The notes beneath the pieces were generated by a model. The model saw only the letters and a program-made list of their open reading frames with translations, was not told where the DNA came from and did no database searches. The position numbers and the translations under genes are program-made. Shown here piece by piece: positions 8,201-49,200 of a DNA stretch of 64,000 nt. The DNA is from Anthoceros angustus (Eukaryota; Plantae; Anthocerotophyta): contig VJWM01000011.1 in assembly GCA_010909165.1 (NCBI GenBank), positions 682,001 to 746,000 of the forward strand, written 5' to 3'. Positions within the stretch are counted from its first letter, which is position 1. Each line of letters begins with the position of its first letter.

Positions 8201-8396
8201 CAGCAGCTCCAGAATGCCGAGGCGGAGCTCTCTCTCCCGCTCCCGCTCCCGCCGCCTGGTGCTTCCAGAGCAGCTGGCTGAGCGGGCTCATGCCGCCCCA
8301 TTTCACGCCTCCCTCCTGCGCGGAAGGCAACGGCAATGGCAGCGGCACAGCCGTGGCGGCAGACGCTGACGATCGGGCCGTGTTGGATACTCTCAT
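5218..8396 (-). CDS. ABC transporter G family half-transporter (WBC, ABCG11-like), multi-exon
   Basis: Walker [10 protein letters not shown], signature LSGGEKRRV, Walker [42 protein letters not shown] domain ending [20 protein letters not shown]. Start codon uncertain (8396, 8291 or ~8115). Confidence 0.93.
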
Positions 8397-8782
8397 TCTC
8401 CCGGCCTGGCCTGGCCTGACGCCCCTGCCCGGACACTGGACAGGATCTTGGTCGATCTGTTTCACGCTCCGAACCGACTGTTCAAATTTCCCAGTTTCAC
8501 GCTCCGTGCTGCAGTGCAATCGACGCCCGGTCGTGAGCTTCAAACAAATCGCAGTCCTGCCCTGCCACAGCCTCTGCCACCATGCTCCGACTGGACTTGG
8601 ACTCGGGTCAAGAGAAGTTGGGTCCGAGTTGGCAACAGCCTCCCACAGCAGGGAGAGAGCGGGAGGGCTGGCTGGCTGGAGGTGGGTCGTGCCTGCACTG
8701 CCCGATGCCGATGCCGGAAGCCGGAAGCGGGTAGAATGATATCTCCTCCTGGAATTGGACGAAGCTTCTCCTTCTTCTTCTT

Positions 8783-8820
8783 GTGTGTGGGTGTGTGTGT
8801 GTGTCTGTGTGTGTGTATGT
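8783..8820. repeat. (GT)n microsatellite
   Basis: tgtgtgtgggtgtgtgtgtgtgtctgtgtgtgtgtatgt. Confidence 0.9.
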
Positions 8821-9311
8821 ACATGCATCGCAGGGCTGAGCTTAGGTGAGCTGAGGAGGTGGCATCGATCGAGCGGAGCGCATTCATGTCACGGGCCCTT
8901 GCAGCCGTGGCCTCCTGGACTTGAAGGCTCCCGAGCGAGCAACGCGAACCTGCAACACGGTGCTCACAGTGTCCAAACCGTGCAGCCAACAACTGCGATG
9001 ATGAGGCAGTGGCTACAGGCGGGTGAGTCATAGACCGTGAGCCTGCAACACCATGCGCAGCATTCAAGGCTAGGCACGCGAATGCACGTCACGGAGTCCG
9101 CGTGTCTTCTCGTCTCAGGCATCCGCACATCATGGTGGACCACTGCAAAGGATGGAATGCGATGGAGGATGGAACCCTAGCTGCTTCTTTTATTCAAAGT
9201 CAGGTCCAGGTCCAGATCCAGGACCATTGTGTTTCTCTTTGTCTGATCGTGATCCGCAGGTGTCAATGGGGAAGGAAAGAAAAAATTAGACAGACAGCAA
9301 ATCTCCTCCTA

Positions 9312-12300
9312 CTAGGAAAGGCACACGGACAAATTCTGCTTCCTCATGGCCCGCACCACGTCGATCAGAAATCTGAGCACCTCCGCCAGGACCAGGGACA
9401 GGAACAATATGATTCTATACCCCACAGCTATGCCAGCTAAGATTAACAAGCTCACCCACTTTCCGTGGAACGAGTCCAGTTGGAACACGTCCTTCAGAAC
9501 CTGCTGGTCCGATAGTGCAGCGGGTGAGGTAGAGTTGATTCCGGAGAACTCGTTTTGGATCAGACCCTGCACATTTTTTGGTGCACCACCGTCAGCCAGC
9601 AGCAACAGCAGCAGCAGGAGAGACAGGTTGGTGGTGTTGGTTCTGTTGTGTTACACCCGGCAGAGCAGCAGCAGCAGCAATAGGGATGACAAGAGATGAA
9701 AACTGCCAGCTTTACCCCGACTGCGTATGAGTGGAAGGAGATGTAGGAAGCTGGATATTTCCAAATGGGCTTGGGCAGCTCACCCGAGAGCTCAAAGTAC
9801 CCAGCCACCAGGAGAAAGAGGACCTGCAATGCCGTACATCACGAGAGTTCTGGTGAGCACCGTTCACGGAGAAAAGAAAAGGAAAGGTCACGATAAGCAC
9901 CGAGGGAAAGGGGGAGGGAGAAGAAAATACCTGCACCACAGCGACTAGAAGAATGCCTTCGTACACTTTGGGCAGGACAGAGGCCACCACCAGCAGGAGG
10001 CCCTCCACGATGGTGAGGCACAGGAAGATGGTCAAGACGAAGTACATGAAGAGGCCAAACACAGGCCGAAGCCCGATCAAGAAATACACGATTCCCGAGC
10101 ATATGCTCGACAGCAGGAACAAGAAGGGGATGGAAGATAGCAGGTTCCCCAAACAGAACATCACAGGACCGGTCTGCATGTGCGATCGTTCTTGCCAATA
10201 CACCTGCACCCACCATGATTTAGATTTTGAGGACGAACAACAAGTGCGCAAGCGACTCGACACTGGATATTGGCCCACAGCCGACCCGGGTACCTTGAGA
10301 TCCTTCACCAGGGCAGGAAACCCACCCGACGCCAGCAACGATAGGAGCGAGACGCACAGAAAAATTGCCGAAGCTCTGGGCTGTCAATCTCAAATGGAGA
10401 CTTGTTACGACTGTTCATGTTTCAAATTCATGTCGACAGTCGAAATCTGTCATATCAGCAATAGGAAGGATTGATGCATTACTTACCCGTACATTGTTCG
10501 GTTTGTCATCGATCTTGTAGAAGGCCGTCCCAATGCTAATCATCAGCAGACAGAAGACAGCCAGGCGCAGCCAGTAATACTTGAAATCCCTCGTCATGTT
10601 CACATACGATCGCCATGTCATAATCCCCACTCGGATCAGTGTTCCTGCCGTTTTTCTTTCCTCTAAAGCTGGTCTTTCCTGAGAAAACCATGACAAGGTC
10701 ACCGTCATGCTCCCAAGAAGGAACGTGACTGTCAGCGGACTGTGAACTTGGACAAGGGAGCGCCTTGTCGACACTGTTACCTGTTCTGCGAGGTCAAGGA
10801 CGCGTGTTAAAACTGTGCTGGCATCAATAGAAGCCTGATAGGTGGTCTCCAGAGTTCGAATGACGACCGAAGAATCCAGCCTTTCGCGAAACAGATCTCC
10901 TTGCTCGTAGTCCTGCATCAAGCAACGGCATTTTATTCATCACTATGATCGGTCCGGCCCCTGAACATGCACATTCGCTTGCGAGAGTTTCACACTTGGC
11001 ATATCAAGATATGTTACCTGCCCAAGCCTTAGTGACATGACTGCCTTGTCGAAGTCGGGGTTGATGGACCGCAGAAAGTGGTCCGGCGGGCTCTGCAGTG
11101 CTGGGCAAGGAAACCCAGCAAGCGCAAAATGCTGTCAAGAAACACATGTGGAGGTGAGGAAATCACTGCCGGCCGACCAAAACAGTACACTTGTGCTACA
11201 CCAACAAGCAAACAGAGCCTACATCTAAGATTGAGCTGGATCCAGGGAAGATCGATCACGTACTTCCAACGCCCCCACAGCTTCCCCGAAGTAGATGGTT
11301 CTACCATGTGAGAGCAGCAACAGGTTGTCTAGGATGGTGAAAGCCTCACTACTGGCATGCTGCAGACTGATTAGCACTGTCCGACCCTTGTTAGTCAAGT
11401 TCTTCAGAGTCGCCATGAACATCAATCCTGCCACACTGGTAGCAACACATCCACCATACCGATCAGCGAGTGCATGAAGGACCACGCAAGTGCAGAACAT
11501 GAGCCAAAGCGAAGTATGGACGCAAGACACTGAGAGCACCACAATGTTTGTACCTGTCAAGGTTATAGTTAGGCTCGTCTAGAAACACCAATCGTGGCTT
11601 GGTTAGTAACTGTACAGCGATGCTCAAGCGCTTCTTCTCCCCCGTCGACAGAGCTGCGATCCTGGATGTGGCATACGCAGTGAGAGAAGTCTCTGCAATC
11701 GCTGCTTCCACCAGGGCAGATTTCTCCGCGCATGAAATGCTGCATTCTGGAAAGCGGAGCAGGGCCGAGTAGTGCAGAGCTTCCCGGATCGTCAGGGTCT
11801 CTATCATGTCCTCCTCCTCCTTTTGCACATACACCTAAACATGACAACAGCCTATATCAGGATCCACCCACCTGCAAAGACAGCACGAGGACAAAATGGG
11901 CCAACTTGAAGCACGTCGTACATATGATCCAGGAGGGATGAACTGTGGGCGCCCATTCAGAACGATCTCTCCATACACTCTCGCATAGGATGGCAAAGTC
12001 CCTGGAGCAACGCACAGACCCACCAAGTATGAACGACAAGTACAGACAAGAAAGGGGAAGGACATGAAGAAACGCGTCTCACCCGCCAGAGCCCTCAAGA
12101 GCGTCGACTTCCCACACTGTGGCGGACCCATCACGGCCAGCAGCTTCCCGGGCAGGGCGTACCCTGTGAGGCCCTGCACCACCTTGTATGGATGGCTCCG
12201 CTTCCCACCATACGCGACGGTGAGATCCTTCCACACCAGCACAGCCCCGCGGTCCAGCTTCAGGGCCTGCCGTCTCTTGTCAGACTCCGACCGCAGCAGC

Positions 12301-12806
12301 GAGTCGTTCTCATCGTTGGGCTCCTCGCCCTCCTGCTCGCCCACAACAAACCCGCTGTGCACCAGCTTCAGGTCCTGCTCCCGGGCCTGGGACTGGGCAG
12401 CCGCCTCCACCTCCTCCTGCTGCTGGAACCTTGCGAGGTCCGGGACGTAGTAATCGGACGCCCTCGCCCCCTGCTCCTCCCACAGCGCCAGATCGCTCCC
12501 GGGCGGCTGCAGCTGCTGCTGCTGCATTCCGGGAAACGCAAACTCGGAGTCGGCGAGAAGGGCATTCTGCCTGGCCGCCTCCCCCCGCCTACCATCCTCC
12601 CTGAAGGTGACGGGAGGCTCGTGCGCCAAGGGCACCGGCGGAGGAGGCGCTTCCGCCACCCGCGCAGCCTGCCCCAAGGGGCTCGGCCCCGGGCTCCGCT
12701 GCCGCCGGACGGAGAAGGGAACCCGCACGAATGGCGGCTTGACCGCCCCGATGCTGGTGCCCGACAACTGGGACTCTGTCACTTCCGGGAGAAAGGCGGA
12801 AGCCAT
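9312..12806 (-). CDS. ABC transporter G family half-transporter, ABCG3-like, multi-exon
   Basis: WKDLTV...GYALPG, variant Walker A GPPQCGKSTLLRALAG, variant signature LSTGEKKRL, DEPNYNLD, FKYYWLRL, LPKPIWKYPASYISFH. These deviations match my memory of Arabidopsis ABCG3. A short extra last exon near 9170-9245 is possible. Confidence 0.88.
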
Positions 12807-19619: not shown

Positions 19620-20486
19620 CTAGTCTTCAGCGATAGAAGCGAACCAGTCATCCTCCACAAAATCTTGCATGTGGTCATCCGTGTAGGGGGTGGGATGGGC
19701 CTCCTCCTGCTGCCCAGCGCTCGGCCCTGGAGCAGCATCCCCGGGCCCGTCCGGTTGAATGCTGTTGGGTTTGAAGTTCTTGAGCATGCCGTGCTCGTAC
19801 CGGCATTTCCAGCCTTTGAAGGCCAAAGGCAGAGGACGCACCTCGGAACCCGTGTTAGGCCCGCGGATGTAAATCTTCTGGTGCCCACCGACATTACCTG
19901 ACACGCTCACATCCAGCGGCACGGGCACAAGAGGGGGCAAGCTAGCCCCGACGTGCCCTCCTTTCCCGTCCAGCGCCTCCAGCTCCAGGTATGGAGCTGT
20001 GATAACCTCAGTCACAATCCAAAGATCCAGAGTCCTGTGGTTTGCAAAGTAGAAGTTTTTGTAGTCAGGTTCGAACATTTCCACCGCACGGTGGAAACGG
20101 GGTGTGGACGATACCGACTGATACGAAGGGACAAGAATCTTCCAGGAATGCACATCCGTCATTCCTAGGGATGCCCCTGTCTGAAACGCCAGCAGCTTGG
20201 TGGACCATGAGATGTCATTCACCACTGTGTTGTTGATTGCGCCATATTCCTCCGACCGGCGGATGTAGGTAGGATCTTGGGCGGAGATGATGCGTACCAG
20301 CTCCTCCTTGTCCTTGCCTTCTGCACAGAGTTCGCCCAGATTGCCGATCAGGCGGAACCCTCGCTTGTCCTTCATCAGGACACTGAACACCGCCAGCCCG
20401 GGCTGGATGGGCAACACCGGCACAGCTCCGAATGTGGTCCACAGCATTTTCACCAATGGGTTCCTCCTGTAGGGATCACAAGCCAT
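19620..20486 (-). CDS. Gasdermin-like pore-forming protein (bacterial/fungal-type architecture), 288 aa, intact and intronless (copy B)
   Basis: MAC..NPLVKMLW..FGAVPVLPIQPGL..FSVL.KDKRGFRLIGNLGEL; LWIVTEVITAPYLELEALDGKGGHVGASLP; LPLAFKGWKCRYEHG; low-complexity linker and acidic tail DDHMQDFVEDDWFASIAED. This parallels bacterial gasdermins as I recall them (e.g. CSDPAITYLKRLGYNVVRLPREGIQP...YLGSL; LYVITQVIKS...GGGSIQLDVP; LVFGFKCFEI..KNG). Confidence 0.82.
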   Translation of the reverse strand: MACDPYRRNPLVKMLWTTFGAVPVLPIQPGLAVFSVLMKDKRGFRLIGNLGELCAEGKDKEELVRIISAQDPTYIRRSEEYGAINNTVVNDISWSTKLLAFQTGASLGMTDVHSWKILVPSYQSVSSTPRFHRAVEMFEPDYKNFYFANHRTLDLWIVTEVITAPYLELEALDGKGGHVGASLPPLVPVPLDVSVSGNVGGHQKIYIRGPNTGSEVRPLPLAFKGWKCRYEHGMLKNFKPNSIQPDGPGDAAPGPSAGQQEEAHPTPYTDDHMQDFVEDDWFASIAED

Positions 20487-20511
20487 CGCGCCTTGCCCGA
20501 GGTCACCCAAT

Positions 20512-33480: not shown

Positions 33481-34099
33481 TGTTCTACAAAGCAGTCTTA
33501 GTGAGATGAAAGAGCATCGCTTGACGGGGTCAAGAGGAACGTGCCTCATGTTCTGAAGTTCTGGAGCCCAGCAGACAGTGTACGGATTGGGGCTGGACAT
33601 CTCGCTTCCTTTCACGGAAGAGCCATCTTCATGGACGAAAGAGAGAGTGCAGCGCTCCTGAGGCTGACAGCCACTCACAAGGCATCCGACAAAGCACAGA
33701 AAAATGTCGTCCGAAACCACTGGTGTCAGGAATGCCTTGTCGTGCAAGTCCACAGTGTAGACAGGTTGGGAACAAGTAGCTAGAGGCGCCTTTGCAGGCG
33801 TGCAGAAGTTGCTCCACTGCATGCTTCTCCGCGCCGCTGGCCAGCACTGGCCCAGCAGAAGTGGATTCGAATCTCCCAATCACACTTGCACGCTTTTGTT
33901 GCAACTTGCAAGAGCCCACATTGATCCATATAAGATAATTGGGATGAGCAGGATGGAGTGGGACGCCGTTTGCTCTGCTTGCCTTTTCTTGCAAGTCCTC
34001 CTGAGAAGGTGGGACGTTGTTGTGGAGGTTGGGCTATGGCTGATCCATCTCTTCCTGCCGGCGCCGCGCTGGTGGACCTGCTCGAGATCCTCGAGTCCC

Positions 34100-37000
34100 G
34101 CTCGCCGCAGCTGCGTGCGTTGCTTGCAGAGCTGGAGTCCGACTCGCCAAAGCGGCAGGAACTGCCATCTGTTGATTCGTGGGAAGCTACTTCAATTGCG
34201 ACTGCCAGGACGGGGAATGTCACCACCGCGAGGAGTGGCACTGGGCGGTGCGCTTGCGTCTGCTCACCGCTATCGGCAGATGCCGTACGCTCAGGAAGAT
34301 TCAACTGAATCCTCTGTGGAAGAGGGTCACAGCGTGAGGCGGGACGAGGCGTTGGCGCTCTTTTCAGGCTTGCAACACAACCTTGTGCTGGAGGAGCTGA
34401 ATCTGTTTGGCTACAAGGGGTTTGGGACGGCAGCAGCGTGCCTCCAGGCACTGAGTGCCGTCATCGACAGAACTCATCGCTCACTGGACTTCCTCGGTCT
34501 GCAATCTGTGGGATTGAGTGCAGAAGGACTGGGTGCCATCGCTGCAGCCCTTGGACGCAATGTCAGCTCTTCAGTGCTGTCCAGATTGTCTCTGTGTGGG
34601 AACGACATCGGGAATGCTGTCGGGCGCAACACTTGGCCGACATCCTTACCAAGTCGCCCAAGCTGCGCAATCTCTGGATGAGCAACATAGGCATGGACGA
34701 GGAAGGAGCCGTGGTGATTGCACAGGCCCTGGCGCATACCACTACACTGGCTGGGCTTAGAATCGGAGATCCTGCGCCCCGGAATCCAAACCGGCCCGCG
34801 CCCATGTTCCTCGTTCCATTGCTCCAAGCTTTGGTGTGGCACACCCTGGCGGATCCTCCAGCTGCTGTTTCTGGCAATCACTCCATCACACGGCTTGTCC
34901 TTGAGTGTCCGGGAGGCCAGGAGGCTGTGGAGCCGGGCTGGGAGAAGCCCTGGCTGGTGCTTCGCACCAACCGGGCTCTGAAAGACCTCAGACTATCCAG
35001 CTTCTTCGTCACACGCGGATTGGGAGCTCTGCGGGAAAACAGCAGCATCACCAAACTCCTGGTGTTTCACTCGGCAGTCGGAGGATGATGACATGGATCC
35101 CATCCTGACCACCATCCTGGATGAGTGCAAGACTGTTGAGGAGGTGCAGATCCGGTTTGACAAGCCCTTTGGTCCGTCCAGCTTCACCAAGGCGTTTTTC
35201 AAGGGTTGCTGCAGAAAACCGCAGCATCAACAGGCTGGTGTTGGATGGCTGGGATGGGCTGGACGACGAGATGTTTGAAGACCTGATTCAATCCCTGTCT
35301 ACCAACACCAACACCCACCTCAGGCTGGATCACATCTCCATCAAGGGCACCTCATGGGAAAAGCAAGGCAGGGGCGAACGTCTGGAGAAAGCGTTGGGAG
35401 CTGCGCGAGTGCAGCCGCAGCTGCGTGCGTTGCTCGCAGACTTGGAGTCCGAGTCGCCAGTGCTGCAAGAACTCCCATCTGTGGATTTGTGGGAAGCTAT
35501 TTCGATTGCCTTTGCCAGGAGGCCTACAGGGAGTGTCAACACCGGGGCAGTGGCAGTGGTACGTACGCCTGCGCCTGCTCACAGCTATCGGCAAATGCCG
35601 GTCGCTGAGGAAGATTCATCTGAATCCTCCGGGAGGAGGGCACTTACAGCGTGAGGGAGGTAGAGGCGCTGGCTCTGCTATCAGGCTTGCAACACAACCT
35701 TGTGCTGGAGGAGCTGAATCTGTATGGCTACAAGGGGTTTGGGACGGCACCCTGCCTGCAGGCATTGACTGGCGTCATGGAGAGATGCTATTTCATTGGA
35801 CTTGCTGGGTCTGCAATCTGGGATTGAGTGCAGAAGGACTGGGTGTCATCGCTGCAGCCCTTGGACGCAACCGCAGCTCAGTGCTGTCCAGATTGTCTCT
35901 TTGTGGGAACGACATCGGGAATGCTGTCGGGCGCAACACTTGGCCGACATCCTTACCAAGTCGCCCAAGCTCCGCAATCTATGGATGAGCAACATAGGCA
36001 TGGACGAGGAAGGAGCCGTGGTGATTGCACAGGCCCTGGCGCATACCACTACACTGGCTGGGCTTAGAATCGGAGATCCTGCGCCCCGGAATCCAAACCA
36101 GCCCGCGCCCATGTTCCTCGTTCCATTGCTCCAAGCTTTGGTGTGGCACACCCTGGCGGATCCTCCAGCTGCTGTTTCTGGCAATCACTCCATCACACGG
36201 CTTGTCCTTGAGTGTCCGGGAGGCCAGGAGGCTGTGGAGCCGGGGCTGGGAGAAGCCCTGGCTCAGGTGCTTCGCACCAACCGGGCTCTGAAAGACCTCA
36301 GACTATCCAGCTTCTTCGTCACACGCGGATTGGGAGCTCTGCGGAAAACAGCAGCATCACCAAACTCCTGGTGTTTCACTCGCGGCAGTCGGAGGATGAT
36401 GACATGGATCCCATCCTGACCACCATCCTGGATGAGTGCAAGACTGTTGAGGAGGTGCAGATCCGGTTTGACAAGCCCTTTGGTCCGTCCAGCTTCACCA
36501 AGGCGTTTTTCAAGGGTTGCTGCAGAAAACCGCAGCATCAACAGGCTGGTGTTGGATGGCTGGGATGGGCTGGACGACGAGATGTTTGAAGACCTGATTC
36601 AATCCCTGTCCACCAACACCAACACCCACCTCAGGCTGGATCACATCTCCATCAAGGGCACCTCATGGGAAAAGCAAGGCAGGGGCGAACGTCTGGAGAA
36701 AGCGTTGGGAGCTGCGCGAGTGCAGCCGCAGCTGCGTGCGTTGCTCGCAGACTTGGAGTCCGAGTCGCTGCAAGAACTCCCATCTGTGGTGTGGGAAGCT
36801 ATTTCGATTGCCTTTGCCAGGAGGCCTACAGGGAGTGTCAACACCGGGGCAGTGGCAGTGGTACTACGCCTGCGCCTGCTCACAGCTATCGGCAAATGCC
36901 GGTCGCTGAGGAAGATTCATCTGAATCCTCCGGGAGGAGGGCACTTACAGCGTGAGGGAGGTAGAGGCGCTGGCTCTGCTATCAGGCTTGCAACACAACC

Positions 37001-39350
37001 TTGTGCTGGAGGAGCTGAATCTGTATGGCTACAAGGGGTTTGGGAGGCACCCTGCCTGCAGGCATTGACTGTCATGGAGAGATGCTATTTCATTGGACTT
37101 GCTGGGTCTGCAACATCTGGGATTGAGTGCAGAAGGACTGGGTGTCATCGCTGCAGCCCTTGGACGCAACCGCAGCTCAGTGCTGTCCAGATTGTCTCTT
37201 TGTGGGAACGACATCGGGAATGCTGTCGGGCGCAACACTTGGCCGACATCCTTACCTCGCCCAAGCTCCGCAATCTATGGATGAGCAACATAGGCATGAA
37301 CGAGGAAGGAGCCGTGGTGATTGCACAGGCCCTGGCGCATACCACTACACTGGCTGGGCTTAGAATCGGAGATCCTGCGCCCCGGAATCCAAACCAGCCC
37401 GCGCCCATGTTCCTCGTTCCATTGCTCCAAGCTTTGGTGTGGCACACCCTGGCGGATCCTCCAGCTGCTGTTTCTGGCAATCACTCCATCACACGGCTTG
37501 TCCTCGAGTGTCCGGGAGGCCAGGAGGCTGTGGAGCCGGGGCTGGGAGAAGCCCTGGCTCAGGTGCTTCGCACCAACCGGGCTCTGAAAGACCTCACACT
37601 ATCCAGCTTCTTCGTCACACGCGGATTGGGAGCTCTGCGGGAAAACAGCAGCATCACCAAACTCCTGGTGTTCCACTCGCGGCAGTCGGAGGATGATGAC
37701 ATGGATCCCAACCTGACCGCCATCCTGGATGAGTGCAAGACTGTTGAGGAGGTGCAGATCCGGTTTGACAAGCCCTTTGGTCCGTCCAGCTTCACCAAGG
37801 CGTTTTTCAAGGGTTGCTGCAGAAAACCGCAGCATCAACAGGCTGGTGTTGGATGGCTGGGATGGGCTGGACGACGAGATGTTTGAAGACCTGATTCAAT
37901 CCCTGTCCACCAACACCAACACCCACCTCAGGCTGGATCACATCTCCATCAAGGGCACCTCATGGGAAAAGCAAGGCAGGGGCGAACGTCTGGAGAAAGC
38001 GTTGGGAGCTGCGCGAGTGCAGCCGCAGCTGCGTGCGTTGCTCGCAGACTTGGAGTCCGAGTCGCCAGTGCTGCAAGAACTCCCATCTGTGGATTTGTGG
38101 GAAGCTATTTCGATTGCCTTTGCCAGGAGGCCTACAGGGAGTGTCAACACCGGGGCAGTGGCAGTGGTACGTACGCCTGCGCCTGCTCACAGCTATCGGC
38201 AAATGCCGGTCGCTGAGGAAGATTCATCTGAATCCTCCGGGAGGATGGGCACTTACAGCGTGAGGGAGGTAGAGGCGCTGGCGCTGCTATCTGGCTTGCA
38301 ACACAACCTTGTGCTGGAGGAGCTGAATTTGCTTGGCTACGTGGGCTTTGGGACGGCACCCTGCAGGCATTGACTGGCGTCATGGAGAGATGCTATTTCT
38401 CATTGGACTTGCTGGGTCTGCAATATCTGGGATTGAGTGCAGAAGGACTGGGTGTCATCGCTGCAGCCCTTGGACGCAACCGCAGCTCAGTGCTGTCCAG
38501 ATTGTCTCTTTGTGGGAACGACATCGGAATGCTGTCGGGGCGCAACATTTGGCCGACATCCTGAGGAATTCGATCGCCCTCCGCAATCTCTGGATGAGCA
38601 ATATTGGCATGGATGAGGAAGGAGCCGTGCTGATTGCAGAGGCCCTGGCGAATACCACCACCCTGATCCGTCTCAGAATCGGAGACCCTGCGCCCCGGAA
38701 TCCGAAGCAGCCGGCGCCCATGTTCATTGGTCCAATTCTCGAAGCTTTGGTGTGGCACACGCCGGATTCGGAGAATCAGGAGGATTGTCATCCTCCTGCT
38801 TCTAGAGCCACTTCCAATCGCTCCATCAGGCTGCTTGTTCTTGAGTGCCCAGGAGGCCAGCAGGCCGTGGAGCCGGGACTGGGAGAAGCCCTGGCTCGGT
38901 GCTGCGCACCAACCGTGCTCTCACTGACCTCAGACTTGCCAGCTTCTTCGTCACACGCGGATTGGAAGCGCTACCTGAAAACAGCAGCATCACCCAACTC
39001 CAAGTAAGTCACACGCGGAATTCGGAGGATGATGACATGGATCCTATGCTGATCACGATTCTTCAGGAGTGCAAGAATGTCCAGCAGCTGCAGCTTCAGT
39101 TTTATAAGCCCTTTGGTCCATCCAACTTCTCCAAGGCGTTTTTCCAAGGGTTGCGGGATAATCGTAGCATCAAGACGCTTGTGTTGGATGACTGCGAAGG
39201 ATTGGATGACTACATGTTCCAGAACTTGATGCGGTCTCTGGGACGCAACTGCAACAACGTCCTGGAGAACATTTCCATCAAGAAAACAACCTGGGAAAGC
39301 GAAGGCAAAGGAATATACATCCAGAATGCTCTCTCAAGGAACATGCGCAG
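34100..39350 (+). repeat. Four tandem ~1.3-kb coding repeats (LRR supermodule)
   Basis: The anchor gcagctgcgtgcgttgct.gcaga..tggagtccga occurs at ~34107, ~35417, ~36727 and ~38026 (period ~1300-1310 bp). Copies 2 and 3 are near-identical; the 5' part of copy 1 and the 3' part of copy 4 are diverged. Confidence 0.95.
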
Positions 39351-40043
39351 AAGAAGCGCTGCTCCGCAGGGTAGGTGCCCCAAGCCAGTAGCTAGCTACC
39401 CTTGTCCTGATTTGTATCTACAGTCAGAACCCACAAACTCAGATGTATACTGACCCCTTCTCACTTGTGCAGGTTCGGAAGAAGTGCCACCACCGGTCAC
39501 GCAACTGTGGCAACCTCTGGTGCCGCAGCAGGTAATGAAACTACATGAATCCATGGATTTGATCCAACCACTTCCAAGCTGTTGTTGTTGTTGCAACTAG
39601 TTTGAATGCCTGTACCGAATGCACCACTTGATGCTGCTGCCGGCAGGCAGTCTGATGATTGACTGATTGGCTGTTTTGTTTTCACCACAATTTCCAGTTG
39701 CTGTTCCTGAGGAGCTCAGTGCCCTGCTTGCCGAGCTCGACTCACCTTCGCCCACACACTCAGTAGTCTTCCTCGTGTGAAGCGTTTGGGCACTTGTTCA
39801 AGAGGGACGTGGAACATCCACAGGTGGAACTTGAACTGCGCATGCGCCTTGAAGGCTATCGGAAATGCCCCACACTCAGATTCATAGATCTCGACCCTCT
39901 TGGGCGTCGAAATTACAGGGTGACGGTGGCAGAGGCGATGGCGCTGCTAGAAGGCCTGAGCTCGAATGCAATAGTGGAACGGCTGGACTTGAGTGGCTTC
40001 CTTGGTTTTGGAACAGGTGAAGTCTGCGCTGCAATCGCCGCTA

Positions 40044-43000
40044 TCTTGCAATCCAGCCGCACCTTGCAATTTCTGAATATGGGATACACTGGCATGACTG
40101 TCGAAGGACTGGCTTGCATTGCCCTGCTGCGACATAATCGCAGCACTGTGCTTCGCACCTTGTATCTTTCTGGAAACACGACTGTGGGAGAAGGTGTTGG
40201 AGCTCAACACCTGGCTGATATCCTGACCAGCACTCCCGCTCTTCGCAACCTGGGGATGTGGGATACAGGGATGGATGAGGCGGGAGCATTGATGATAGGG
40301 GATGCTCTGGCTCAGAACACCACACTTGACTGGCTGAACATAGGATTCAATCAAGCGTGGAGGCCAAAGCAGGCAGGGATGATGGCCACGCTGTTAGCTC
40401 GAGCATTCACCCTGGCATGCTGGACGCAGACCAGGAGGCTGAAGGTGTTGCTCCCAAGCTTCCTTCTGTTAACGAGTCTGTCACACATCTCCAGCTGGAA
40501 GTATGGGGAGCAGGACAGCAGCCTGTCATCGCTGAGTTGGGAGAAGCTGTGGCCCGCATGCTGCGGTCGAACATGACTTTAAGGCATCTCGATGTATGTA
40601 GCTGCTTTATAAGCCAGGGATTGGAGGGGCTGTGTGACAACAGCAGCGTTATCCGTGTGACAGTCCGACATGGTAGCTCTAGTGCTAAGGAGGACTACTG
40701 CAAGCTGATGCCAATACTGCAGAGTTGCCAGACAGTGGAAAGTTTACAATTAGCTCAGAACAGTTTGGGACCTTTGGGATCATCCGACCTCCCGAAGACG
40801 TTTTTCAAATCGTTGCAGGACAATCGTTACCTCAACAGGTTGGTGTTGGATGGCTGGAAAGGGTTGGACGACAATATGTTCCAAGACCTGTTGCGGGCTC
40901 TGCAAGTGAACACCAATTTGAAGAGTATATCGTTCGAGAACACTGTGTGGAAAAGTCAGGAAAAGGAGCTGCAGTGGATGAACTACTACGCCAAAACAGG
41001 GAATACCGGAAAGCTCTGGCAGGGCTCCAACAATGCCAGTGAAATCATGTCGCCTCGTACTTTGTGGATTTCCATATGCAGGTGAGCCACATGCTGAACC
41101 CAAAGTTTGTACATCCCCAAATGGCGTAGTTTGTGTCAGACTTCACTGCAGTTGTTTCTGTCTTCTACATCTGTTTTCTTGTCTTAACGTTGTTTTCGTC
41201 TCCGGAGTGTAATCGGTGGTAAATGTTGCTGTTTCAGGAAAACCACGATACGGAATACGTTGATGAGTATGCAAACACACGAAAACGATGTTGAGATGGA
41301 GGGTGAAACGATTTCGAAGCACATACCTCGAACCCTTGGGTTTGAGGTTGAGGTGATAAAAGATGGTCCAGCCTTGAGAATTACCGTTTGGGATCTTGCA
41401 GGGCACCGGAGTTTCATGCTCTTCACGATTTCGTCTTTCCTGCTGTGAATAACTCTTCTCTCTTCTTGTTTGTCTATAACCCGTTCAAATTTGGTGGTAA
41501 TTATTCAAGTGCGGAAATGAAGGATAGAAAGGATTTTCGAGATGAATTTATTTATTGGCTTAAATTTATTGCTTCCAACTCATGGTTAGCTCAACAGGTG
41601 AAACCTTATGTTCATGTGGTGGTAACATTTGGTGACAAGCTTGAAGGTAGGATGTCTTGCAATCCAGCCGCACCTTGCAATTTCTGAATATGGGATACAC
41701 TGGCATGACTGTCGAAGGACTGGCTTGCATTGCCCTGCTGCGACATAATCGCAGCACTGTGCTTCGCACCTTGTATCTTTCTGGAAACACGACTGTGGGA
41801 GAAGGTGTTGGAGCTCAACACCTGGCTGATATCCTGACCAGCACTCCCGCTCTTCGCAACCTGGGGATGTGGGATACAGGGATGGATGAGGCGGGAGCAT
41901 TGATGATAGGGGATGCTCTGGCTCAGAACACCACACTTGACTGGCTGAACATAGGATTCAATCAAGCGTGGAGGCCAAAGCAGGCAGGGATGATGGCCAC
42001 GCTGTTAGCTCGAGCATTCACCCTGGCATGCTGGACGCAGACCAGGAGGCTGAAGGTGTTGCTCCCAAGCTTCCTTCTGTTAACGAGTCTGTCACATCTC
42101 CAGCTGGAAGTATGGGGAGCAGGACAGCAGCCTGTCATCGCTGAGTTGGGAGAAGCTGTGGCCCGCATGCTGCGGTCGAACATGACTTTAAGGCATCTCG
42201 ATGTATGTAGCTGCTTTATAAGCCAGGGATTGGAGGGGCTGTGTGACAACAGCAGCGTTATCCGTGTGACAGTCCGACATGGTAGCTCTAGTGCTAAGGA
42301 GGACTACTGCAAGCTGATGCCAATACTGCAGAGTTGCCAGACAGTGGAAAGTTTACAATTAGCTCAGAACAGTTTGGGACCTTTGGGATCATCCGACCTC
42401 CGAAGACGTTTTTCAAATCGTTGCAGGACAATCGTTACCTCAACAGGTTGGTGTTGGATGGCTGGAAAGGGTTGGACGACAATATGTTCCAAGACCTGTT
42501 GCGGGCTCTGCAAGTGAACACCAATTTGAAGAGTATATCGTTCGAGAACACTGTGTGGAAAAGTCAGGAAAAGGAGCTGCAGTGGATGAACTACTACGCC
42601 AAAACAGGGAATACCGGAAAGCTCTGGCAGGGCTCCAACAATGCCAGTGAAATCATGTCGCCTCGTACTTTGTGGATTTCCATATGCAGGTGAGCCACAT
42701 GCTGAACCCAAAGTTTGTACATCCCAAATGGCGTAGTTTGCAGACTTCACTGCAGTTGTTTCTGTCTTCTCTACATCTGTTTTCTTGTCTTAACGTTGTT
42801 TTCGTCTCCAGTGTAATCGGTGGTAAATGTTGCTGTTTCAGGAAAACCACGATACGGAATACGTTGATGAGTATGCAAACACACGAAAACGATGTTGAGA
42901 TGGAGGGTGAAACGATTTCGAAGCACATACCTCGAACCCTTGGGTTTGAGGTTGAGGTGATAAAAGATGGTCCAGCCTTGAGAATTACCGTTTGGGATCT

Positions 43001-43263
43001 TGCAGGGCACCAGGAGTTTCATGCTCTTCACGATTTCGTCTTTCCTGCTGTGAATAACTCTTCTCTCTTCTTGTTTGTCTATAACCCGTTCAAATTTGGT
43101 GGTAATTATTCAAGTGCGGAAATGAAGGATAGAAAGGATTTTCGAGATGAATTTATTTATTGGCTTAAATTTATTGCTTCCAACTCATGGTTAGCTCAAC
43201 AGGTGAAACCTTATGTTCATGTGGTGGTAACATTTGGTGACAAGCTTGAAGGTAGGATGTCTT
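40044..43263 (+). repeat. Tandem duplication of ~1.61 kb (40044-41654 / 41655-43263) spanning late LRR and N-terminal Roc
   Basis: The junction ggatg-TCTT-gcaatcc at 41655-41658 shares TCTT with both parental ends (40044-40047 and 43260-43263). Confidence 0.92.
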
Positions 43264-44994
43264 CGTTTGCAATACAGTGTTGGTGATGAAGAAAAGTTCA
43301 TGGCTGTTGTGGAACATCCAATGAACCCACTTTCATCAATGGACAGAGTTGGAAAGATGTGTATGCACCACGCAGCCTTATAGAGGAAAAGCTACGCTTG
43401 TCAATAAATTGGCCCCAATTCCCAATATTTGTGAGCAGACCCGTATACATGTGCAAAGATGGGCTGAGGATCAACAAGGTATGCCAATCATTTCTTGAGA
43501 AGTTTAGTGAGTTGTTTCATAGCACATGGGCGGCAATAGGGCATCCACTCATCTCGAGGATTACAAGATTTCTTAGAGACTTCATGGACAAAGAGGATAG
43601 CTGGAAAGTAGTAGCATCATATCTCAAGGATTGTGGGAGATCATATATTTCCAAATGTCGCGACTTATGGTCATCAACCTCCGATGGTTAGGAATGGGCG
43701 TTTTGGTCAGCTGATTAGTATATTTGGTGAACGGACAATAGGCAAGATTGGCTTCAAGTTCAAAATGGGTTCATCAGCAAATATGGGTTGAGTAGCCTTC
43801 TAAAAATGTCTTTGAACAAGGTAGGGCTTGATGAAACCATTGTGAGCGAGGAACAATTCATCCAATTGATGCTTGAGTTACACCTTTGCCACGAAAGTAG
43901 AGATGAGGAAGGAGAAGTGCGTTATTTTGTTCCAATATGTATGTATAAAGAAGATGGATCAGGAGTTGACCAACAGTTAGTATGGCCTTCACACGGTGGT
44001 AATCTTCATGATTATATCTTTATGGGTTTGCGTCTACAATGTGATGATCAAGATTGTACATTCCTCACACCAGGATTTTTCCCTAGATTACAGGTTTGTA
44101 ACTTTTCTCAAGCTCACTATCTTTTTGTTTTATGTCCTTGGAAACTTCTTCTTTTGTTTATTATTATTATTGGCTGTTCACTAGTCTCATTGTTCCTATA
44201 TATTGTAGGTATTTTTATACACATATTGTTTGACAAAAGGCTGGGTTGATGAGGAAAGACCAATTGATTCAGGAATAAAATTGGAGCGTAATGTCCTTTT
44301 AATATCTGCAGAGGCACTGGATATTATTGTGGAATTTAATCCCGCAATCGGTTGCTACATAGATATATTGGCCCGATCTACTCAAGGCTATTTAGAGTCC
44401 ATGTCATTTCTGAAGGAACATATTGTATCTCAGATTCGGGCATTTTGTGCTTCGTATGAGGGTTGTGCAGGGGTCACACTGGTTGAAGGTGTTCTTCGAC
44501 ATGAATGTGTGGCATCCCTCACTCTATGCAGACATAGGAAACATGAGTGTATCCTGACAGATAAGCTAGTCAAAGCGGTGGCTGCTGCAAAGCACCGATG
44601 CTATGCTCACTACACGCAGTCTTGGAGAGCTATCTTTAATAGCAGCGTCGAGGGCTCTGCACTCATTTTAAAGGCCAACAAAGAGTATGCAACCGTGGTG
44701 GATGGTCATGTCATTTTGGGACAAAAAGAGGACCTTGTCAGAGCCGAAGCAGAGTTCCAAGGTTTGAAGCTCTCAATCCTGTGAATAGTCTGTTTTTTGC
44801 TAGGTGTCCTCATTCTGCACATGTAGTTTTCAGTAGCATTACACAAGTAGGCCATTTGTTCCAAACTCTGAGGCTGTACCTACTGCAGGATCAAAATCTA
44901 GCAGAAGATGTTGAAACTTCTACACTATCCGCAAGTAGTGCAAGTGCGAAAGAAGAACCCATTGTTGGGAGTAGTTATCCTAACCATGGTGGAA

Positions 44995-45710
44995 GGAAAC
45001 GAAGAGGTTTGGCAATGATTGTGAGTATGGAAGAGGAGACTGGAGGAGTCAGAGAGGCGACTTGAAGCTCTTTTGAGACTTTGGCATTTGATACGATATA
45101 TTAGTGGATGGTTCGAGAGTGTGAAAGCACGATTTAGGAGCGTACAAACTCCCTACCTAGCTAAGGACGATTGCTTTATGTTGCATCAATGCTCATGGGG
45201 GGATTGAAGAAGATGGCAGACAGTACATTCTCACAAGCGGAGCACGGCGGGAGAAGCTATATGTTGATGATGATATTTTGAAGCCCATCTCTGAATCCCC
45301 GTGGCTGAGAGACAAGCCCAAAGTGTTTCTGCTCAATGCTTGTCGAGGCACTGGTAGCCTTATCACAAGCGAGAAAGCTAAGGACTCTGAAGTTGAGAGT
45401 AGCCAAATTGTGAGCAAGAGAGCCGGAGAAGTCCGACTCCTGCATTCTGTGAAGGATTGTCTCATCTTCTTCTCGACCAGTCATGGACAACAGTCCTTTA
45501 GAGATGTTGAGAAAGGCACAAACTTTATCACAGCTTTGATGAAAGCCATCATTGTGGGTCTCAAGAAGGGATGATGTACAGATTTTAACATCGTGATTGC
45601 CGAGGTCACGGAGATAGAAGTCAAGCTCCCAAGTGAAGCGAAGGCGCCGAGAAGAGATCCCAATGTCGAGTTGTACTCCACACTCACAAAAAGCTTTGCT
45701 GGTCTTTACC
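44995..45710 (+). other. Caspase-type (peptidase C14A-like, p20+p10) domain of the Roco gene
   Basis: KRRGLAMIVS; ..LFETLAF; DDCF..CINAHG (His codon 45194-45196); WLRDKPKVFLLNACRG (Cys codon 45341-45343, same frame, 49 codons later); DCLIFFSTSHGQQSFRDVEKGTNFITAL; VELYSTLTKSF. Small indels lie in the p20 N-terminus and an in-frame TGA is at 45572-45574. Confidence 0.85.
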
Positions 45711-46258
45711 ATAAGTTCACTCACTTGGCCAACGGAGTTGTGTGGCCATGTTCCTTCATCCGTAATCGTAATAGAATCATCGTTCCCAACAAGACATTGT
45801 TGGTGCAGCTTCTAATGCGGTCTCATTTGTCCTTTTCTGCTCATTTCTTGTTCAGTGGCTCGCATACAATTTGGAGGAGAAACGACTCCTTCTGTGGATG
45901 AACCTGTAGGCAAGAGCTTATGGACTTTAGGGAGGAAAGAACAAGGGAGTTGTGGAGCTGTAGTTGTACTCTTTGGTTTCAAGAAGCAAGTCCGGATGTA
46001 AGCGTTCCTCGGATCAAATGACTTCTAGTCCTTTTGCATACTAGATGTGTGTCCATCTTCCTGAGCGGCCCAGGCGTTTGAGGCTTGCCTTTCTTTCACG
46101 ATGAGAAAACACAAAGCGGATAAAGACTCACGTAGCGGTGCCAAACCCTCACCTCCAGTGTTAGAGCTATGACATTTTCGCTATTGAAATGTGGATTAGG
46201 TTACTTTTCATGAATCACCGACAAAAGACAAACATGTATGTAAGTTTGTGTTGTCCTT

Positions 46259-49200
46259 CCGTTGTACCAAATTGACCAATCCATGTAATCTCTCGATCGC
46301 AAGGAAAAGTGCGCTATATTCTCGCCTGTGAGGAGAGGCGATCGTCAAAGCTTTTTGCTTTGCCAACTAGTAGTGATCCACATAAAAGTGTGCGATGTCG
46401 CTATCGACTTCTCGGCCGCCAACATCCTTAAAAGTGAGGTTGAAATTACTTGCCTTGGTATATGTTAGACATAAATGTCTAGTGCCTTTCAATTAGCGAG
46501 GATTCGCTTTAACAAAGGACCCAATGGCGCTTCTGTGGTTGGACAGAAACGTGAAACAATGCACGTAGCTTGTGAAATATCAGCCTTGTCCGGCCTGAGG
46601 TAAAGTAAATCACACAACTCGATAAGGGACAACCGCCATTTTTGCCTTGTCTAAATTACATCGCGCCTCGAGTGATAGCTTCACCTCGCAACCGGGTGGC
46701 TACTCAATTAATACCTTGCAGTTGAATTTAGATAAAATCGAATGAAATGCTCTTGATGTAATGTGATGATCCTGTAAGGTCGAAGAAGAACTGAATGCCC
46801 AATGCGAAACGAAGAGGGCCTACATCTGTCATATCCCACTCTTCGAAGAGCTGCTGCTTGACTTCTGTAAGGATTTCGTTGTCGCTTGCAAAAATGAAAT
46901 TATCATCAATGTAAAGGGCAATAATGCATAGCTGGTTGTTCTTGCACAGGATATAAATACTGCTATCGGCAGTAAGGGGCTCAAAACCTAAAACACGAAG
47001 CTTTGCATCTGCTCTTCCATTCGGATCGTGCGGTGCTTCGATTCCATCGACTTTATAAGCTCACATACTGTGTCGATCTAATACATAACCATGGCTGCGC
47101 ATGTAGATTGTTTATTCTAGAGGCCCATTTAGAATGCTGCTTTTACGTCCATCTGATGGACGATGAGTTTATGCTGAACAGCGAAACATAACAGAATTCT
47201 CATTGATGTCGGACTACGGGCTAAATGTCTCGTTATAATCGGGGCCTTGAACTTGGGTGTAGCCCCGTGCTACAAGGCGGGCCTTATATCTAGCAACAGA
47301 CCCATCAGGATGAAGCTTAAGTTTAAATACCCATTTTGAGGTAATAGCTTTCCGTCCTGCAGGCAATTTGACTAGCTTCCATGTGTGGTTATCTATCAAA
47401 GATTGGTACTCACTATCAATGGCTTTCTGCCAGTCTACCGTTTGGGGTGAACTAAGAGCTTCCTGAAATGTCATAGGCGTATCAAGAGGCTCCGTAATGG
47501 TAAGAGCAATGTGCTGAGCCATCTCTGCTAGACTACCTCGCACATTGTCTGAAGCATTTGGTGTTGCACGAGAAACAAATGAATCACCTGGTGTGTAGGG
47601 AGGTTCCAACCAGGCTTCTCTTGGACGATGTGTCCGTGCAGACCTACGTAAAGGTAACTGATCATGTAAAGGCTCTTGTTGTGGCTCATCAGCAACATGG
47701 ACAGGTGCTGGTAAATCAGGATCTAACATGTCATCAGCGAGATTGGGTGGACCAGGGTCATCATGATGCTGGAAAAGAGGCTGATCATCATCAGGTGGTA
47801 TGTCAATGTCAGGCTCATCAAAGTCAGGTGCTACAACTGTTGGTAAGGGTGCTACATAATTCAAAGGTTGAGGTTGACTTAAAGGTTCATCATCAAAATC
47901 TGACTGGTGGTATATGTTGTCTTCAAAATCTAACTGTACATACAGGTTGGTCAGTGAAAATTGCAGGAGGTGTGTGTCCATAGATGGAACCTGCAGGTAT
48001 GGGGTCGTCATGGCTAGTGCTAGTATGTGCATGTGAGTCTAGGATGAAAGCTTCATTAAAACTTACACTGCGAGCAATACATGTATTGCTATGTAAGGGA
48101 ACTATGTATAGTTCCCTTGTAAGGGGATTAAAAAGCTTATAGCCTTTGACTGTGTCGGAATAGCCGACGAACACATGTTTGGTTGCCTTGTTGTCCATCT
48201 TATAGTGCTTATCAGCAGGAATATAGGCATATGCCACAGCACCAAAAACTCGAAGGTGACCAATACGTGGCTTGTGTCCAGACCATCTTTCAAAAGGAAT
48301 TGTGTCGTACAGAGGTTTAAGGGGCAGCCGGTTGGCGACATAGTTGACAGAATCAACAGCTTCTGCCCAGTAACCCCTGGTAAGTCTTGCTATTGTAAGA
48401 GTTGCTCTTGAACGCTCCTGTAATGTGCGGTTATACCTTTCTGCATATGGATTCTGAGGAGGATGGTAGGGCACTGTCAACTCATGAATGATGCCCTTCT
48501 GCTTGCAGAATTCAGTAAATTCATGACTGAGGTACTCTTTGGCGTTGTCAGTCCGTAGGCGTTTGATGGTGGAGCCTATCTGAGTTTCTGCCATGGCTAC
48601 ATATTCCTGAAATTTGCTGAAGACTTGATGTCTATTGTGAAGGAAATAGAGCTTGCAAAAGTGGCTCTATTCATCTAAGAATGACAAGAAATACACTGCT
48701 CCTCCAAAGGATTGTGTAGACATGGGTCCACAAACATCCGAGTGTATGACTTCCAGTAAAGAGGTGGCTCTTGTAGGTGAGGGGTCATTGTAAGGCTTTT
48801 GAGTAAGTTTCCCAATTTGACAGCTTTTACAAAAGAGTGTTGCATCAGGTTTGAAAGTAAGCCCGTCTTTGTACAAGGCTTTATTTTTCACTACCCTATC
48901 TACATATGCTAGACTAGGGTGACCTAATCTACAGTGCCATAAGAAAGAGGGACTTACTGCTGGTTTAGCATCTGCTACATAGGCTTGCTGTGTGTTTGAC
49001 TGAACATGCTTGGTGGTAATGTGTAGATGATATAGGTCATGGTAAGGGAAACCATTAGCTAGGACCGGTGAAATGGCCGGAGACTACATATGAAGCTGGG
49101 GTAAATGTACCTGCAGTGCGATCACGGGTTAGTTTGTGTATTGAAAGCAAGTTTTTAGTCATACTAGGAACATGGAGTACCCTCTGTGAATGTTGTGTCC

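Follow-up and report, generated by a model that had tools for sequence, protein, structure and literature searches.

A caspase-type protease domain probably encoded by the last large exon of a hornwort LRR-Roc gene

The DNA considered here is a stretch of 64,000 nucleotides from the hornwort Anthoceros angustus (assembly GCA_010909165.1, contig VJWM01000011.1, positions 682,001 to 746,000; hereafter the window), which on its forward strand encodes a caspase-type protease domain at 44,95x-45,714. The domain lies 3′ to a long array of leucine-rich repeats (LRRs) of the ribonuclease inhibitor (RI) type and to an exon resembling a Roc GTPase domain (Table 1). Read in order, the proposed gene would consist of the RI-type LRR array, the Roc GTPase-like domain, about 400 aa at the place where a COR domain is expected, a complete C14A-like protease and a short tail ending at the stop at 45899. 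Farther away, on the reverse strand, lies an open reading frame (ORF) resembling bacterial gasdermins.

Table 1. Positions of the features discussed in the text. Window coordinates, except for the last two rows, which give contigs of relatives.
Feature	Position	Strand	Evidence or remark
Bacterial-type gasdermin homologue, 296-aa ORF	19620..20510	-	PADLOC bGSDM
LRR sensor region, RI-type LRR_6 repeats in supermodules of ~1.3 kb, including copy A of the tandem duplication (40044-41658)	33800..42691	+	Pfam, repeat families D1-D5
Copy B of the tandem duplication (last LRR module and first half of Roc)	41655..43263	+	Copy comparison
Intron, last LRR exon (...TLWISICR) to Roc exon (KTTIRNTL...)	42692..42841	+	980-nt X1 contig
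Roc GTPase-like exon	42842..43286	+	Pfam Roc, ESM atlas
Region of expected COR-A	43300..44091	+	Frames broken in assembly; open with RNA letters
Intron, GT..AG	44092..44206	+	X1 joint 44091 to 44207, depth 560, depth dip in bin
Last pre-caspase exon, COR-B position	44207..44761	+	184-aa ORF 44230-44781; no family match
Putative intron	44762..44955	+	Donor AAG/GTTTGA (phase 1); acceptors 44952/44955
Caspase-type domain exon (Peptidase_C14, C14A-like)	44956..45714	+	Pfam, PDB phmmer, family HMM, caspase alignment, AF2, Foldseek
First break cluster	45038..45178	+	Letters missing relative to RNA; TGA 45063-65 in shifted frame
Stop-free core, 137 aa	45161..45571	+	His, Cys in NACRG, intersubunit-type loop, Arg in SFRD; AF2 pLDDT 86
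Second break cluster	45554..45592	+	Net 6 nt missing relative to RNA; TGA 45572-74 in shifted stretch
Intron after the domain, 141 nt	45715..45855	+	RNA joint given as 45710 to 45856
Last coding exon (...IWRRNDSFCG), stop TGA 45899-901	45856..45901	+	RNA
Relatives' contigs with NB-ARC-LRR ORFs	L001:1855-5564 and 7538-12643; L002; L003; L004:139-5984		
Further relatives' contigs with NB-ARC-LRR ORFs	L010:591-6749; L011; L012:10001-18614		

The domain is of the caspase type (C14A-like). Its stop-free core matched Peptidase_C14 in Pfam (PF00656; E 1.8e-13, 51.2 bits against a cut-off of 21.4) and a family hidden Markov model (HMM) built from 14 relatives (E 2.5e-39), and the domain as edited with letters from RNA reached 194 bits against that HMM, over positions 15-253 of 269. 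When the 137-aa core was compared with PDB sequences by phmmer, 121 matches were returned, and the best 60 of these 121 were all true caspases, beginning with caspase-4/-11 (~1e-7) and continuing with caspases -8, -1, -6, -3, and -7. An AlphaFold 2 (AF2) model of the core, calculated from a 37-row alignment, shows a caspase fold with a predicted local distance difference test score (pLDDT) of 86 and a predicted template modeling score of 0.74. A Foldseek search of the PDB with this model placed caspase-8, -11, -7, -3, -9, and CED-3 on top, followed at a distance by MALT1 (ranks 35-43) and legumain (rank 50), and no metacaspase was found within the top 50. An earlier note on this stretch, made from its letters alone, had proposed a true caspase rather than a metacaspase; the listed PDB matches, which are caspases only, and the Foldseek ranking both agree with it, as does the fact that, among named proteins from outside the plants, caspases of insects, molluscs, and mammals come nearest. 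No other caspase-like stretch was found in the window by tblastn, and the PADLOC models gave no match for the caspase piece, for P0006 or for the Roc piece.

All of the motifs that the earlier note had quoted are present on the forward strand at ~44,990-45,700, distributed over three frames. RGLAMIV and RGLAMIVSMEEE are read in frame 0 (codon starts divisible by three), which is ended by the TGA at 45063-65; F-ETLAF is still in frame 0, 3′ of that TGA; and DCF, within DDCFM, is in frame 1. The segment CCINAHG...KPKVFLLNACRG...QSFRD...GTNFITAL occupies frame 2, which is open throughout the core, and ELYSTLTK is also in frame 2 but 3′ of the second TGA. The catalytic His (CAT 45194-96, in NAHG) and Cys (TGT 45341-43, in NACRG) therefore do share one uninterrupted frame, as had been stated, together with the S1 arginine of the p10 part (AGA 45500-02, in SFRD), and both NAHG and NACRG fall in the caspase columns in the PDB phmmer matches, in the caspase alignment, and in the alignment of relatives. 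The further statement that a single frame runs on through the domain is correct for this core and incorrect for the whole, which as assembled uses three frames, contains two in-frame TGAs, and is interrupted at least eight times, so that the locus as assembled does not code for the domain without a break; the note had mentioned indels and passed over the extent of the interruption. Its caution that the p20 arginine could not be confirmed because of indels applies to the assembled frame, from which this residue is lost, and not to the RNA form (DRPGGAVD, EEDRPGGAVDRGR) or the relatives, which have it. Because the RNA form carries the p20 Arg, the residue exists in an expressed form, and when that form is aligned with cricket, pangolin, and mussel caspases the canonical columns hold R, H, C, and R. 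The S1-pocket Gln is replaced by Asn in NACRG and the SWR-type Arg is present as SFR, both as read from the letters, and these two residues are invariant across the bryophyte-type relatives.

The broken frame raises the question of whether the locus has decayed or has been misassembled. We compared the window with two runs of the same species, one of which (X1) behaves as RNA, with a spliced GT..AG joint from 44091 to 44207 and introns without cover, and the other of which (X2) is DNA. Relative to near-identical RNA contigs, each break is a deletion of 1-8 nt in the window. In the first cluster, the window is short of 8 nt at 45038-55, of a T after each of positions 45070, 45094, and 45114, of a net 3 nt at 45144-57, and of TG after 45178. 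The three missing Ts are all on one 127-nt RNA contig that otherwise differs from the window by 1 substitution across the 88 nt covered, and the TG joins DCFM to CCINAHG as DCFMCCINAHG, with the length seen in all relatives. Eleven RNA-supported edits restore a single open frame of 282 aa (44889-45714), and in the region of the expected COR-A, six RNA-supported insertions, in groups summing to three, turn three broken frames into one open frame. The two TGAs were considered as nonsense mutations and rejected, since both lie inside deletion-shifted stretches; no nonsense substitution was found in the window relative to the RNA contigs.

Deletions of this kind are consistent with noise in the assembly. 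The two tandem copies in the upstream part of the gene (Table 1) align over 1606 matched bases with 0 substitutions and 7 gaps comprising 12 letters, which points either to indel noise in copies of very recent origin or to a duplication falsely made by the assembler, and the 1.3-kb LRR supermodules differ by 8-45 substitutions versus 9-16 gap events. Of the 18 indels between RNA and window, 8 fall at CG or CHG sites of the RNA form against a background of 12% (P = 6e-4), CTG is read as CG twice among the indel sites, and most of the remaining sites are in homopolymers or TG repeats. These counts would fit a footprint of methylation in long-read base-calling. The six-G run at 45197-45202 is 5 or 6 G long among X2 DNA contigs and constant in X1 RNA, which suggests that X2 is itself error-prone in homopolymers. 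Because the tandem copies differ by indels without substitutions and the indels concentrate at CG/CHG sites, consensus error is likelier than decay, and the frame breaks are probably errors of an indel-noisy long-read assembly. The actual locus, or a copy ~99% identical to it, probably encodes and expresses an intact domain.

The competing explanation takes the deletions as real: this member of a tandem array would have decayed into a pseudogene, and the intact RNA would stem from paralogues, such as a copy ~11 kb beyond the end of the window. The number of breaks and the two in-frame TGAs would be expected of such a copy, as would the internal 1.6-kb duplication and the many breaks in the LRR array. 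The caspase-domain family is multi-copy, with contigs 90-99% alike, and the RNA contigs could therefore derive from a paralogue. Two further observations weigh in the same direction: at four sites (45070, 45094, 45114, and 45178) contigs of the DNA run X2 read as the window does and lack the extra letters of the RNA, and the indel density relative to RNA (~2%) exceeds the copy-to-copy estimate of ~0.2% per copy. The first of these depends on what X2 represents, which may be independent data or the noisy reads behind the assembly. Decay in nature, however, yields far more substitutions than indels, whereas the window shows ~14 deletion events versus ~1% substitutions and no nonsense change, with the deletions placed at CG/CHG sites, homopolymers, and TG repeats; two copies inside the same gene differ by indels only, and X2 varies in homopolymer length where the RNA does not. 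We consider decay the less likely account of this locus. In this assembly, frameshifts should be checked against reads before pseudogenes are called.

The upstream part of the gene was said to contain LRR and Roc modules on the same strand, and both were found: Pfam LRR_6 matches had E values of 6.5e-8 and 4.7e-5, the Roc-like exon follows, and the splice evidence is consistent with a single gene. The best ESM atlas cluster for the Roc piece was Roc (score 0.92, 184 shared features), and the switch II motif DxxG is present as WDLAGH. Assignment to the Roco family, as claimed along with a COR domain and a likeness to TORNADO1, is less well supported, and the label has several weak points. The Pfam Roc match (E 1.9e-5, 25.3 bits) falls just below the cut-off of 27. 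The P-loop, which is read across an RNA-supported splice junction (...TLWISICR/KTTIRNTL..., giving SICRKTT), does not conform to GxxxxGK[ST]. COR was not detected by Pfam or PDB phmmer (three pieces each) or by the ESM atlas (two pieces); the 184-aa pre-caspase exon had no match in the homologue search, and its single-sequence AF2 model (pLDDT 41) was unusable. Frame errors at 43528-43731 may hide a COR. As judged from its sequence, the Roc domain may be a pseudo-GTPase or an atypical G domain, and gating by its GTPase is doubtful. With COR undetected and the P-loop non-canonical, “Roco” and “TORNADO1-like” remain architectural resemblances. An initial candidate for a disrupted P-loop, VVFVSSVIGGKCCCFRKTT (~42795-42850), was rejected because by RNA it is mostly intron, the junction being ...SICR/KTT.... 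The G4 region of the Roc-like domain (...VTFGDK...) also looks non-canonical. Separately, LRR supermodule copies at 34300-39300 differ by 9-22 gap events and 8-144 substitutions, and in the youngest pairs the indels equal or exceed the expectation from natural divergence.

The resemblance to TORNADO1 and other Roco proteins lies in RI-type LRRs at the N-terminus, a Roc-like G domain after them, and then ~400 aa at the place of COR. The gene here differs not only in the P-loop and the undetected COR but also in an LRR array that is far larger and in the C-terminal protease; TORNADO1 has RI-type LRRs and Roc-COR with no effector domain (PMC4104024), and the likeness is one of architecture. Among the green lineages searched, ROCO genes have been reported only in flowering plants (PMC4104024). 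In placozoans, ROCO proteins are known in which CARD or TIR domains, modules of death or immunity, are joined to a Roc-COR core (PMC4104024, Figure 1); these would recruit caspases through CARD, whereas here the protease itself appears to be fused.

Relatives of the domain were sought among 1.84 billion representative proteins, which yielded 101 homologues, none above 46% identity. The closest matches are caspase-only ORFs of 260-380 aa from Logan and JGI assemblies; other near matches are transcripts of the hornwort Nothoceros aenigmaticus and proteins of Marchantia polymorpha and M. paleacea, and only after these bryophyte proteins come insect, mollusc, and mammal caspases. The Nothoceros transcripts share the bryophyte-type caspase domain, and the Marchantia proteins (MARPO_0108s0037 / Mp6g00900, 807 aa; KAG6554914 of M. 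paleacea, 1113 aa) carry it at the C-terminus, as here, but with an alpha/beta hydrolase rather than LRR-Roc as N-terminal partner; identity in this group, the Nothoceros transcripts included, is 29-44%. The Marchantia members are public under automatic names (“Caspase family p20 domain-containing protein”), and we found no paper that discusses these alpha/beta-hydrolase-caspase proteins. The LRR-Roc-caspase architecture itself was not found elsewhere: the representative proteins were at most 46% identical, and a metagenome scan returned five short, distant contigs without context. As a side observation, P0001 (4564 aa) and P0110 (6872 aa), both from ENA assemblies, have 18 separate stretches matching the caspase piece, and P0001 was the best match of the representative search (E 7e-23).

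Caspase-type ORFs lie just upstream of NB-ARC-LRR ORFs on the same strand in seven contigs, which come from several independent samples (Table 1), from which it follows that the caspase module has repeatedly been attached to immune-receptor-type sensors. The caspase ORFs linked to NB-ARC-LRR are the closest to our domain (33-39% identity by alignment, 38-46% in the phmmer search). L001 has a donor (CAG/GTAAGT) at the end of its caspase ORF and an acceptor (TTACAG/) that would join the NB-ARC ORF in frame. These contigs may represent a possible class of caspase-NLRs (nucleotide-binding LRR proteins) in a bryophyte-like eukaryote. They resemble the hornwort gene in the tie to an immune-receptor-type sensor and differ in order and switch, the predicted place of the caspase being N-terminal to a STAND ATPase there and C-terminal to a Roc GTPase here. 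In some of them, a ~250-aa ORF with a weak thioesterase or hydrolase match lies in between.

The gasdermin-like ORF is ~13 kb from the 5′ end of the LRR-Roc-caspase gene, upstream and in divergent orientation. Its match to the PADLOC bGSDM profile (E 3.7e-8, 31.2 bits) covers profile positions 141-229 of 257, and it was the sole match: none was found in Pfam, among PDB sequences, or among word-indexed homologues. From this position in the neighborhood, the ORF may be put forward as a candidate substrate of the caspase domain; a functional pairing is made less compelling by its location on the other strand, with a pentatricopeptide repeat (PPR) gene and retroelements in between. The acidic tail of the ORF contains ...IQPDGPGD.... 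On the other side, a copia-type retroelement (RVT_2, integrase, SH3-like) occupies 47214-48594 on the reverse strand, 1.3 kb downstream of the stop of the caspase gene.

Animal caspases (MEROPS C14A; caspase-8, -4/-11, and -3/-7) share with the hornwort domain the fold, the xAHG His and xACRG Cys, the flexible loop that separates the large-subunit part from the small-subunit part, the two S1 arginines (that of p20 in the RNA form), and the motifs GxxF(I/V)xAL and S(T)L(T)K, with ~31-37% identity by phmmer and 20-25% in structural alignments to solved caspases. The hornwort domain differs in having Asn rather than Gln before the catalytic Cys, in lacking a CARD or DED prodomain, and in its predicted position at the C-terminus of an LRR-Roc protein of a land plant. 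Cleavage after Asp by a pocket with this exchange is accordingly putative. It may be that the domain is intact and fused as we propose and yet is not an Asp-directed death protease, either because Asn for Gln gives it another P1 preference (e.g., Glu or small residues) or because it acts as a scaffold or processes signaling peptides without killing the cell. The occurrence of the same Asn in all bryophyte-type relatives fits this view, as does the degenerate P-loop of the Roc domain. Conservation of both S1 arginines and of the catalytic dyad does not, and a role in immunity or cell death is indicated instead by the partners to which the module is fused or adjacent, namely LRR-Roc, NB-ARC-LRR, and a gasdermin homologue. 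We regard a non-Asp function as possible rather than probable.

That the caspase exon belongs to the LRR-Roc gene is well supported by the structure of the transcript around it. A 980-nt X1 contig aligns from 42841, and its upstream letters are the window sequence ending at ~42691, which defines the intron before Roc. Farther 3′, X1 depth drops from ~1500 to ~70 exactly at 44762, at a consensus donor, and is zero over 44798-44941; splicing to an acceptor at either 44952 or 44955 would carry the frame on into ...EEPIVGSSYP..., the point at which similarity to the relatives sets in. After the domain, RNA continues across a further intron into the last coding exon and fades by ~46100, and the C-terminal tail resembles the ...LYWRRRD... 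ends of the relatives. The introns lie on the same strand, the drop at 44762 coincides with a donor, the acceptors are frame-compatible, and no ATG precedes the first beta-strand within the caspase exon; from these observations we infer a single fused gene. The weak point of the fusion is that no RNA contig bridging 44761 to the caspase exon was found at the locus, which would also be expected if the caspase exon were a separate transcript whose adjacency to the LRR-Roc gene is incidental, and the other architectures of the relatives, upstream of NB-ARC-LRR or joined to an alpha/beta hydrolase, show that the module can be used elsewhere. A separate transcript would need a start codon, which the exon does not offer ahead of the first beta-strand, and the next covered stretch after the donor is the caspase exon, in compatible phase; we think this alternative very improbable. 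Contamination by animal or microbial DNA, suggested by the animal caspases that are the nearest named non-plant relatives, can be dismissed with near certainty. The contig also carries the PPR gene and copia element, the introns of the gene are short and of the GT-AG type, and its LRRs are of the RI type. Hornwort and liverwort proteins are the closest relatives, animal caspases being only ~31-37% identical, and several copies of the family occur in both the DNA and the RNA run of the species itself.

We therefore favor, with somewhat more confidence than doubt, the reading that a spliced land-plant gene encodes the domain in its last large coding exon, that the domain is intact and its breaks are probably consensus errors, and that the product is a receptor-coupled protease. 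Initiator caspases become active when they are brought close together, Roc-COR modules dimerize in a nucleotide-dependent manner, and the gasdermins of bacteria and fungi are set free by proteases encoded next to them. By analogy, and much as in the one-protein inflammasome that the earlier note had suggested, the large LRR array would sense a ligand, and the Roc domain together with the region that follows would shift the oligomeric state of the receptor, bringing the C-terminal caspase domains together so that they are switched on by proximity, in the manner of initiator caspases. Each intact domain would carry the S1 Arg, the His, the Cys of NACRG, and the second S1 Arg, and would cleave its substrates C-terminal to an acidic residue. 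Prime candidate among these would be the bacterial-type gasdermin homologue of the cluster, whose cleavage would lead to a cell-death or immune output. Bacterial Roco proteins have been reported to monomerize upon GTP binding (preprint 10.1101/2023.11.13.566844), and given this and the degenerate P-loop, the direction of the switch cannot be guessed.

The logic of such a system is not new, as bacteria, fungi, and animals already provide examples of sensor-NTPase-protease fusions and of protease-gasdermin pairs. Gasdermin systems of bacteria and fungi, in which a caspase-like or subtilisin protease is encoded alongside, and animal inflammasomes (NLR-CARD-caspase-1-GSDMD) follow the same scheme, in which repeats sense, an NTPase switches, and a protease of the caspase fold is paired with a gasdermin. 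They differ from the hornwort locus in that sensor, switch, and protease would here be one polypeptide with a Roc G domain, and in that the protease and gasdermin genes here are 13 kb apart on opposite strands and cleavage is putative. Reviews describe caspases as restricted to animals and plants as having metacaspases only (PMC10896300, PMC5756287). A broad plant survey of the N-terminal domains of NLRs does not mention a caspase domain (PMC11218826), and our literature search found no paper on bryophyte caspases, Roco-caspases, or caspase-NLRs.

Contrary to those reviews, the locus provides evidence of a land-plant family of caspase-type domains that is expressed and spliced and is coupled to sensors resembling immune receptors (LRR-Roc in this gene, NB-ARC-LRR among the relatives), near a gasdermin homologue. 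What the window contributes to this is the finding that the breaks are deletions only and fall in error-prone contexts, the p20 Arg, and the setting of the relatives next to NLR-type genes. Should the domain prove active, the age of the caspase/gasdermin death logic would become testable, as would the question of descent versus transfer into plants and the identity of an executor of receptor-triggered cell death in non-seed plants. We speculate, as a rather doubtful extension, that bryophyte-grade plants keep a pyroptosis-like pathway in which the LRR-Roc receptor, through a proximity-activated, Asp-directed caspase, cleaves the clustered gasdermin and kills the infected cell, the same module also signaling for NB-ARC-LRR receptors. 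Were this so, the rule that plants are without caspases and gasdermin death pathways would be overturned.

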